NCBI GenBank assembly: GCA_965112735.1
Contig: OZ218950.1
Coordinates: 3,906,001-3,970,000 of the forward strand
From: Phaeosaccion multiseriatum
Lineage: Eukaryota; Protista; Ochrophyta, other classes
Direction: 5' to 3'
Length of the DNA: 64,000 bases
A program made the position numbers and the translations under genes. Positions 3,496 to 9,396 of the stretch are shown in pieces (within the stretch, counting starts at the first letter, position 1; each line of letters opens with the position of its first letter). The notes beneath the pieces are model-generated. The model saw only the letters and a list, made by a program, of their open reading frames with translations. It was not told the origin of the DNA and made no database searches.

Positions 3496-5793
3496 ATGGG
3501 GAAGCTGGAGACGAAGCTTGCTTCCCTGGTGAGCATGCTGAATCGGTCTTCGGACTGGGTCAGTGTTCCAGAGGTGGTGATGCTAACCTTCATCGAAGCC
3601 GTGGACTTGATGCGAGAGCAGAATCGAGAGCTGGAGGAGCTGAAGGACGAGCTGAAGTCCTTACGGAAGGGCGGGGATGTGTCAAGGGAAGCAGATACCT
3701 CGGCACTAACAGTAGCTTCTCAGGGCGGGACAGTAGCGGCGAGCGCGAGAGAATTGAGTCTAGAGAAGAAGGAGAACATTTTGGAAACGCTGAGCTCACT
3801 ACAGCATCACCATCACAACAGGCATCGACGGAATAATACACACGGGGCGGCGATAAGCGTCCACAACAGGGAGAAGGAGGCAGCCCAAGATGGTATCGCC
3901 ATCAGCCCACCGGCGCAGGGACAGGAGATTCCCAAGAAGAAGAAGAGAGTCGGTATGGGTGGTGTGTCCTTTGCCCCACCCCCATCAGAGGTAGAACCAG
4001 AGACAGAGCCAGAGCTAGAGGCGAAGGCAGCGCAAGACGATAGTGCAACCAGCAGCCCAACATCTCAGGGACAAGAGATCCCAAAGAAGAAGAAGCGAGT
4101 GTGTATGGGTGGCGTGTCCTTCGCCCCAGAACCGCCCGAGGTGCAGGGAGAGCCAGAAGAAGCAGGGGCAGGGCCAGAACCAACACAAGAAGCAGAAGCA
4201 GAACCAAGTATCAGAAGTAGCGACCCAAGCCCGGGAGGGCATGAGAGGGACGACTCAAGCGATAGTGTCATTCGCATTGCTTCAGATGGGGACATACAGG
4301 GGGGTGGCAGTAGCGATGACGATGGCGCGCCAGGTCATGCACGCGACGACTCCTGTGACAGCGTCATTCGAACAGGAGACACGGAGCCGGGGGCTATGGT
4401 GGGAATTGGAAGGGGTGTAGAAGCGGCGGCCACCGAAGCCCTCGCAGAGGAGGAGTCCATAGAGGCATCCCCGGCTCCCGCAAGTCGAGACATGATGATG
4501 GGCCACGAGCGGCGGCAGTCGAGCGTGAAGGAGCTGGCGGACCTCATCGAGAGTAAGGCAAGGGGCATGCCTCCTCCATCTCCCTCCCCCCCTGGACTAT
4601 CAACAGGGAAAAAAGGGTGCGTGCTCGAGTCCCGTCTCTCTCTCTCTCTCTCTCTCTGTGTCTCTCTCTCTCTCTCTCTCTGTCTCTCTCTCTCTCTCTC
4701 TCTGTCGCTCTCTCTCTCTCTCTCTCTCTCTCTGTCTCTCTCTCTCTCTCTCTCTCTCTCTCTCTCTCTCTCTCTCTCTCTCTCTCTCTCTCTCTCTCTC
4801 TCTCTCTCTCTCTCTCTCTCTCTCTCTCTCTCTCTCTCTCTCCCCCTCTCCTTCATGCGGCACGTAAACCTTTCTCGCTCATTTTTGTCTCTCCTCTCTT
4901 TTCCCTCTCTTTTGTGTTTTCTTTCCCTTGCCTTTTTTTCGTTGTCTTCCCTTCCGTCCAGCGTACACTTCGCGGCCGATGAGGACGTGAACGTGTTTAA
5001 ACTCAAACTTGACGAGACATTCACAGTTCACACAGCCCTCAAGCAATTGGCTGATGAAGATAGGGGAGGAGACGGCGGGGATGGGTCTGGCTCCGGGTCG
5101 GGATCAGGATCGTCCGAGGAAGAGGGCCTCGACGAGGACCAGAAGAAGAGGAAGAAGAGCAAGAAGAAGAAGACAGGGAAGGAGTTGGTGTTTGTGTTTG
5201 AGCACGACGACGGGTCGGTTTCATACGGCGACACCAAGGGCAACAACGTGCTCAGCCCTCGTGACTCGCCCCTCCGCCCGGCGTCGCCGGACGCAGCTGG
5301 AGACGGGGCTGAAGAAGCAGGAGAAAATCCCAAACAGCACGGCAGGAACGGAACTATTGTTATCTTCGACCGGAACGCCAAGAAGGGGCAAGCGGGGGCG
5401 AGAGACGGACAGAAAGTTGGGGCAGGTGTGGGTCCCGGGGCCGCAGCGGCAGACCTCAAGCAGTACTGGCAACAGCGGCGGAGGAGCTCAGAAGAGGAGG
5501 ATCTCGCAAGAGAGGCGGCGGAGGCGGCCACAGTTGGCGCAGCCACCAACACCACCGCTTCCGCTGCCGCTGCCGCTTCCCCTTCTCCCTCTTCGTCATG
5601 GCCGGCGGAGGACAGTGCCGTCAAGTCTACAGCGCTGAAAAAGAAGAAGCGACTGTTGAAGGTCTTCTACCGGCGACGGGGCTCCAGGGACGAGCACGGA
5701 ACATTGGACGGGAGTGAGGAAAGTGGGGGTGGGAGGGGCGGGGTGGTGACTCCTGAAGTGGCTGCGTTGATAGACGCGCTGGCCGAGACTTGA
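3496..5793 (+). CDS. Unknown protein with N-terminal coiled coil and long disordered region, five HxRxxS/T motifs and RVxF-like motifs. Exons ~3496-4616 and 4962-5793; start could be the ATG at 3268
   Basis: Long ORF 3235-5793. A (CT)n-filled GT-AG intron at 4617-4961 (345 nt) gives KKG|VHFAADED after splicing. No recognisable catalytic domain. Confidence 0.7.
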   Translation: MGKLETKLASLVSMLNRSSDWVSVPEVVMLTFIEAVDLMREQNRELEELKDELKSLRKGGDVSREADTSALTVASQGGTVAASARELSLEKKENILETLSSLQHHHHNRHRRNNTHGAAISVHNREKEAAQDGIAISPPAQGQEIPKKKKRVGMGGVSFAPPPSEVEPETEPELEAKAAQDDSATSSPTSQGQEIPKKKKRVCMGGVSFAPEPPEVQGEPEEAGAGPEPTQEAEAEPSIRSSDPSPGGHERDDSSDSVIRIASDGDIQGGGSSDDDGAPGHARDDSCDSVIRTGDTEPGAMVGIGRGVEAAATEALAEEESIEASPAPASRDMMMGHERRQSSVKELADLIESKARGMPPPSPSPPGLSTGKKGCVLESRLSLSLSLCVSLSLSLCLSLSLSLSLSLSLSLSLSLSLSLSLSLSLSLSLSLSLSLSLSLSLSLSLSLSLPLSFMRHVNLSRSFLSLLSFPSLLCFLSLAFFSLSSLPSSVHFAADEDVNVFKLKLDETFTVHTALKQLADEDRGGDGGDGSGSGSGSGSSEEEGLDEDQKKRKKSKKKKTGKELVFVFEHDDGSVSYGDTKGNNVLSPRDSPLRPASPDAAGDGAEEAGENPKQHGRNGTIVIFDRNAKKGQAGARDGQKVGAGVGPGAAAADLKQYWQQRRRSSEEEDLAREAAEAATVGAATNTTASAAAAASPSPSSSWPAEDSAVKSTALKKKKRLLKVFYRRRGSRDEHGTLDGSEESGGGRGGVVTPEVAALIDALAET
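4636..4841. repeat. (CT)n microsatellite of about 200 bp inside an intron
   Basis: Directly visible, with a few interruptions. Confidence 0.97.

Positions 5794-9396: not shown

Follow-up and report, generated by a model that had tools for sequence, protein, structure and literature searches.

The present analysis concerns a stretch of 64,000 nucleotides from the ochrophyte alga Phaeosaccion multiseriatum (assembly GCA_965112735.1, contig OZ218950.1, positions 3,906,001-3,970,000 of the forward strand), referred to here as the window, and within it a plus-strand gene whose predicted product carries five copies of the motif H-x-R-x-x-S/T. This gene is, on its sequence, a real two-exon gene encoding 650 amino acids, and its product is a member of an undescribed, mostly disordered protein family that has so far been found only in ochrophyte algae. 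Sites 1, 2/3 and 4 form three islands that are conserved at aligned places in other lineages. The best overall explanation of these features, for which the case stands about evenly balanced, is a disordered family whose conserved HxRxxS/T islands would be phosphorylated by an NDR/LATS-type kinase, with phosphorylation switching an adjoining element of the protein. The original prediction, made from the letters of the same DNA, also joined this gene to a neighbouring MST-like kinase gene as a linked Hippo-like module; that part is taken up further below.

The gene is modelled as follows.

3496..4616, plus strand: exon 1, 373 codons and 2 bases, coding for the helical N-terminal domain, for sites 1-4 and for two internal duplications, both old
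4617..4961, plus strand: intron with GT..AG ends, 345 base pairs (bp), almost wholly (CT)n, placed from sequence
4962..5793, plus strand: exon 2, with the stop codon at 5791-5793

A stop-free frame at 3235-5793 of the plus strand spans the (CT)n intron, which contains no stop codon and has a length that is a multiple of 3. The raw open reading frame (ORF) of 852 residues displays the intron as a long Leu-Ser run, and the spliced product has 650. The two-exon model is preferred because three independent places agree with it: five orthologues can be aligned over the start Met at 3496 and residues 2-60; joining 4616 to 4962 gives KKG|VHF, acidic residues and VNVF, a type of motif that is unbroken in the orthologues from Vaucheria, Tribonema and two metagenome contigs (L001 and L003, described below); and at the C-terminus the final 50 residues and the place of the stop codon agree with the orthologue ends. 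Exon 2 holds the second half of this [KR]xVxF unit, a KELVFVFE strand, site 5, an RLLKVF strand and a C-terminal helix. Similarity searches were made exon by exon, and the joined 650-residue product was used for the motif count and the shuffles.

An exhaustive HMMER search with exon 1 returned five proteins, each matching the N-terminal 35-125 residues only. The orthologue from the xanthophyte Vaucheria litorea is a complete transcript product, and a transcript product from a second xanthophyte, Tribonema gayanum, was added by a word search with the Vaucheria protein. The remaining orthologues are gene-caller fragments on metagenome contigs of four lineages (L001, 22 kb; L002; L003-L005; L006). 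The G+C content of the orthologue contigs ranges from 35% to 55%, compared with 59% for the window, and the metagenome contigs are thus assigned to other organisms. Pfam and NCBIfam scans of both exons and of the orthologues gave no match, and an exact look-up of the Vaucheria protein returned no record. Word searches with exon 1 and exon 2 returned nothing, the Vaucheria protein included, as low-complexity words swamped the candidates. The best scores in the ESM Atlas (0.76-0.78) were noise, and metagenome scans with the N-terminal block and with the C-terminal half produced no further confirmed locus.

All lineages of the family share an N-terminal helical domain, which is probably a coiled-coil, and the motif I-L-x-x-L-S-x-L-Q. 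They also share one to four units in which a Lys/Arg patch precedes [KR]-[GSN]-V-x-F, with Asp/Glu residues and V-x-V-[YF] after it, as well as a K-E-L-V-F-V-F-E-N-type strand, R-L-L-[RK]-V-F and a terminal helix, P-E-x-A-x-L-I-x-A-L-A-x-T. AlphaFold2 (AF2) models the N-terminus of the window protein as three helices, with a mean predicted local distance difference test (pLDDT) score of 71, and a fold search with this model against the PDB gave no match at E <= 0.001. The Vaucheria protein is modelled with helices to residue 119, a terminal helix and three strands, the rest being disordered; the strands fall in the VxVY, KELVFVFEN and RLLRVF segments (pLDDT 80-85). A SARAH domain was considered for the C-terminal helix of the window protein and was rejected, the helix being only about 12 residues long.

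The five motifs named in the original prediction were all recovered at their starts.

3823..3840, plus strand: site 1, HRRNNT, in exon 1
4240..4257, plus strand: site 2, HERDDS, in a block GHxRDDSxDSVIR, duplicate of site 3
4336..4353, plus strand: site 3, HARDDS, in the second copy of the GHxRDDSxDSVIR block
4504..4521, plus strand: site 4, HERRQS, directly before SVKELADL
5338..5355, plus strand: site 5, HGRNGT, in exon 2

This number is larger than chance would provide, as would be expected of a substrate of NDR/LATS kinases: five sites are present where 0.13-0.32 are expected. Shuffles of the protein's own composition gave a mean of 0.13 motifs, and none of 20000 reached five. Other stop-free segments of at least 150 amino acids in the window contain 0.49 motifs per 1000 amino acids, which predicts 0.32 in a protein of 650; against this background the Poisson probability is 2e-5 for five or more motifs and 3e-4 for four or more. 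When all triplets of the form a.b..c in the 650-residue protein are ranked, H.R..S comes first and H.R..T fourth. The motif density of the window protein is 7.7 per 1000 amino acids; in yeast, a background of 0.36-0.45 matches per 1000 amino acids has been reported, compared with 2.95 in docking substrates of the NDR-type kinase Cbk1 (PMC4428629).

Two of the sites had been attributed to an internal duplication, and sites 2 and 3 are indeed real duplicates, old ones with 72% DNA identity. Of the codon differences in their 13-residue core, 5 are synonymous and 2 non-synonymous, the latter both at x positions, and H, R, DDS and DSVIR persist in either copy. Masking the second copies of the repeats leaves four sites, and the excess becomes only marginal after correction for the number of patterns. 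The other duplication lies upstream.

3868..4161, plus strand: repeat, two copies of 50 codons, core QGQEIPKKKKRVxMGGVSFAP, 72% DNA identity between copies

Within this repeat the 21-residue core shows 7 synonymous differences and 1 non-synonymous difference, and the flanks have diverged. The core, made up of a Lys-rich patch resembling a nuclear localisation signal (NLS) and a GVSF element, is by this comparison under purifying selection.

Conservation in the orthologues was a further expectation, and it is seen in part: sites 1, 2/3 and 4 recur in L001, L002 or L003, site 5 is private to the window and the xanthophytes are free of the motif. Site 1 has the form R-H-R-R-x-x-[ST] in the window and, at the corresponding position of the alignment, in L001, L002 and L003; Vaucheria has NSRQKS there. 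For site 2/3, both window copies and L001 (HIREDS followed by SDSVIR) have H-x-R-[DE]-D-S-x-D-S-V-I-R. Site 4, H-x-R-x-x-S with V-K-[ED]-L-A after it, is found in the window, in L001 (HKRAPS) and in L003 (HGRSPS), and in L001 and L003 the block after it is VK[ED]LANVF. In the window an additional residue follows the Ser of site 4, so that the H-R-S spacing has been kept although the distance to the next block has changed. Positions -4, -2 and -1 vary among lineages, and H(-5), R(-3) and S/T(0) stay the same at sites 1, 2/3 and 4. Codons at the sites also vary among lineages, including switches between TCN and AGY serine codons. L001 bears an additional site of its own, HERFFS.

The invariance of H(-5), R(-3) and S/T(0) appears as the pattern to be expected of NDR/LATS-type phosphosites. 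The three islands have nothing else in common, and because these unrelated islands share only the three positions, an NDR/LATS-type kinase is favoured as their likeliest reader, with the evidence placing it at about an even chance; the consensus comes from animals and fungi and may not be that of the stramenopile kinase. Among AGC kinases, the requirement for His at -5 is described as unique, and dependence on it is not known from any other basophilic kinase (PMC4320110). Substrates of Cbk1 in yeast have been predicted from conserved consensus sites in disordered regions, and such sites are gained and lost by lineages (PMC4428629). In the mechanism considered most likely, the H-x-R-x-x-S/T sites of the three conserved islands would be phosphorylated by an NDR/LATS-family kinase in the window lineage and at least two others. 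Phosphorylation would then switch an adjoining binding or localisation element, e.g. a docking unit of the protein phosphatase 1 (PP1) type or the Lys-rich NLS-like patch.

Several observations weigh against phosphorylation by an NDR/LATS-type kinase. The sites are borne by only three independent lineages: the Vaucheria and Tribonema orthologues have no HxRxxS/T motif, with the rest of the protein kept, and L003 is without site 2. Site 5 occurs in the window only, and the orthologues have a basic patch and KSVQF or KNVHF at its place. The exon structures of the L001 and L003 orthologues were taken from stop-free segments. No RNA run contained the stretch; the runs that contain it are genomic contigs (DNA), collinear with the genome across the kinase introns. 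The motif count alone would be borderline across a proteome of ten thousand or more proteins, since another protein of the same window has three motifs. This is a Kelch-repeat protein (KLHDC2/KLHL20-type match; 39359-40945, plus strand) with a Ser/Arg-rich disordered tail and the motifs HPRRYT, HGRSHS and HRRVRS, from which it follows that HxRxxS/T is not rare in Arg/Ser-rich algal proteins.

These observations feed an alternative in which the islands are kept for another reason, either as a binding peptide or as sites of some other basophilic RxxS kinase, with the His incidental and the excess owing much to duplication or composition. The sites do sit in longer conserved blocks (RHRR..S.RAA, DSSDSVIR, SVKELA), so H and R may have been kept with the block, and the marginal excess after masking, the Kelch protein and the xanthophyte orthologues all fit such an account. 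It is nonetheless judged rather unlikely. The three blocks have only H(-5), R(-3) and S/T(0) in common, the H-R-S spacing of site 4 outlasts an insertion or deletion that shifts the remainder of its block, and a His at -5 is reported to be needed by no other basophilic kinase (PMC4320110).

A second alternative, compatible with NDR/LATS-type phosphorylation, is that the main role of the protein is PP1 docking, with the repeated [KR]xVxF-acidic-VxV[YF] units acting as RVxF-PhiPhi[xF] strings and DSVIR as a SILK-like element. The usual PP1-binding string consists of RVxF and PhiPhi[xF], and the SILK definition has been widened to G/S-I/V-L/V-K (PMC9813921). Every orthologue has one to four matches to [RK]-x(0,1)-[VI]-{P}-[FW], with Lys/Arg before and Asp/Glu after, and VxV[YF] lies 6-9 residues past the Phe of each RVxF-type match, which fits the PhiPhi[xF] definition. 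In the window, the strict RVxF match exists only across the splice junction 4616/4962. Against this, the [KR]xVxF units have Gly as their second residue, which is atypical, and the SVIR of D-S-V-I-R, adjoining site 2/3, falls outside the confirmed SILK definition. The VxVY, KELVFVFEN and RLLRVF segments are modelled as strands in the Vaucheria protein and may pair mutually instead of acting as free peptides, and the recognition of PP1 motifs by sequence alone is described as all but impossible (PMC9813921). PP1 docking as the main role is possible, if on the whole doubtful, and a PP1-docking scaffold tuned by nearby phosphosites would be an attractive mechanism that is put forward only tentatively. 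The PP1 regulators KNL1, PPP1R15A/B and RRP1B likewise combine a basic patch, [KR]xVxF, an acidic stretch and PhiPhi x [FY], and have phosphosites near their docking elements. The window family differs from them in having several units per chain, Gly/Ser at position 2 and an AF2 model that suggests intramolecular strand pairing, and the likeness here is one of sequence motifs.

NDR/LATS-type phosphorylation can also be compared with known substrates of these kinases. The protein had been proposed as an effector regulated by NDR and by 14-3-3 proteins; an NDR-type substrate is plausible, given three conserved site types, and the 14-3-3 part finds no counterpart, as the motif with Pro at +2 is missing. 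The mode 1 and mode 2 motifs of 14-3-3 (R-S-x-pS-x-P and R-x-x-x-pS-x-P) have no match in the window protein or in the Vaucheria and Tribonema proteins, and site 4 of L003 (GRSPSVK) fits RSxS without the Pro. HxRxxS sites that depend on the His are known from Kif23/CHO1, a protein with no transcriptional role (PMC4320110). The LATS sites control 14-3-3 binding there, whereas the window protein lacks a kinesin or catalytic domain and a 14-3-3 link is not indicated. The Cbk1 substrates Ssd1 and Ace2 of yeast are similar in having clustered, conserved Hx[RK]xx[ST] motifs in disordered regions with gain and loss among lineages (PMC4428629). They belong to another eukaryotic supergroup and show no homology with the window protein, and the Cbk1-type docking motif [YF]xFP is absent from the window, Vaucheria and Tribonema proteins.

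A comparison with animal YAP had also been drawn. YAP/Yorkie and the window protein both have several HxRxxS/T sites in disordered sequence, and one of the site types, H-x-R-D-[DE]-S-x-D-S, resembles HSRDES..DS, which we take to be the phosphodegron region of YAP. The window protein shows no detectable homology to YAP; it has neither a TEAD-binding region nor a DSG degron, and it lacks the Pro at +2 that 14-3-3 binding would call for. The comparison is not supported. The accompanying statement that no WW domain is visible is borne out, as neither exon nor the full-length orthologues gave a Pfam match.

Downstream of the gene, on the opposite strand, lies the MST-like kinase gene.

6422..9381, minus strand: MST-like STE20 kinase gene, six exons, 552 amino acids, exon boundaries placed from sequence with consistent phases
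9381-9232, 8841-8641, 8426-8296, 8167-7678, 7316-7199 and 6990-6422, minus strand: kinase exons, with the Pkinase match on exons 2-4

An N-terminal STE20-type domain is confirmed by the top PDB matches of the kinase exons, which are all STE20 kinases. Exon 4 scores 147 bits against STK3/STK4 (MST2/MST1), 126 against STK10 and 118 against STK24, so the description of the neighbour as MST-like stands; exon 2 does not discriminate (41.0 bits against STK3, 40.8 against STK24). The gene resembles MST1/MST2 (STK4/STK3) in an N-terminal STE20 domain, an acidic linker with DSGTMVR and a C-terminal coil with a sub-threshold SARAH match. It differs in a SARAH match below the Pfam cut-off and in an exon 2 that scores equally against MST3. 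The best Pfam match of the last 52 residues is Nore1-SARAH (16.3 bits, E 0.0087, below the cut-off of 21), and no Mst1_SARAH match was found there. The junction of exons 5 and 6 reads D-Y-D-S-G-T-M-V-R, similar to what we take to be the linker of human MST1/2, which the PDB searches did not return; the linker and tail gave only poly-Gly and acidic low-complexity matches in the PDB. The label MST-like is a fair one for this predicted kinase, and full membership of the MST family appears less firm. CT/GA runs like the intron at 4617-4961 are also present in the kinase introns near 7040-7110 and 8250-8290, and a (GCCT)n run at 7330-7400 precedes kinase exon 5. The MST-MOB1-NDR/LATS module has been described as highly conserved in unicellular and multicellular organisms, and an analysis cited in the same review first finds Hippo/MST in Amoebozoa, Dictyostelia and Apusozoa (PMC7761452). 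The presence of an MST-like kinase in an ochrophyte therefore has a certain interest of its own. A literature search found no paper on Hippo-type signalling in stramenopiles.

The two genes are convergent and about 630 bp apart, as first described, with stop codons at 5791-5793 (plus) and 6424-6422 (minus).

5794..6421, no strand: spacer between the stop codons, 628 bp, with a (CAGA)n/(CAGG)n repeat over much of it
909-3134, minus strand: pentatricopeptide repeat (PPR) protein, single exon, 741 amino acids, divergent from the plus-strand gene, start codons about 360 bp apart

Adjacency of the plus-strand gene and the MST-like kinase gene is most likely coincidental. MST-type kinases act upstream of NDR, and an MST-like kinase gene at 628 bp would be a rare kind of chance neighbour for a gene whose product bears conserved NDR-type sites; on this rests the idea of a physically linked Hippo-like module kept together by selection, e.g. 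through shared regulation of overlapping 3' ends. The flanks of the orthologues lend it no support. The 1.15 kb past the orthologue stop in L001 and the 0.43 kb in L003, which are short flanks, gave no match to the six kinase exons, and their translations contain no recognisable kinase tail, the query tail exon being of low complexity. The upstream neighbours differ too, with the PPR gene in the window and a glycosyltransferase in L001. HxRxxS is moreover not phosphorylated by MST itself, the pairing was noticed post hoc and, to our knowledge, neighbouring genes in eukaryotes are not generally linked in function. A linked module is consequently judged very improbable. An exact look-up of the PPR neighbour returned no record. 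Upstream of the L003 orthologue there are PPR/TPR-like fragments on the opposite strand, for which tblastn showed no similarity. A kinase in L001 (4506-5582, minus strand, 4.4 kb upstream of the orthologue) was considered as an NDR or MST candidate and rejected, as it is CaMKK-like and unrelated to the MST-like kinase. Beyond the kinase gene, a 433-residue ORF at 10300-11601 (minus strand) contains tracts of poly-Gln and poly-Ser as well as Ala-rich ones, and it matched nothing in Pfam.

The most far-reaching account combines these elements: the output of the MST-MOB-NDR cassette in ochrophytes would pass through a lineage-specific disordered PP1-docking scaffold with a His-dependent NDR switch, its gene being retained next to that of the MST-like kinase as a co-regulated convergent pair. 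Its probability is slighter still than that of a linked module; if true, it would give the cassette in ochrophytes an output branch without a transcription co-activator.

A protein family without a Pfam entry is now defined, and conservation within it lies in short motifs, not in domains. In the cited literature, NDR/LATS substrates come from animals and fungi only. HxRxxS/T sites that are conserved across algal lineages could offer a cheap test of whether the preference for His at -5 is ancestral to eukaryotes, and the same sites may be used to ask what the MST-MOB-NDR cassette controls in algae.

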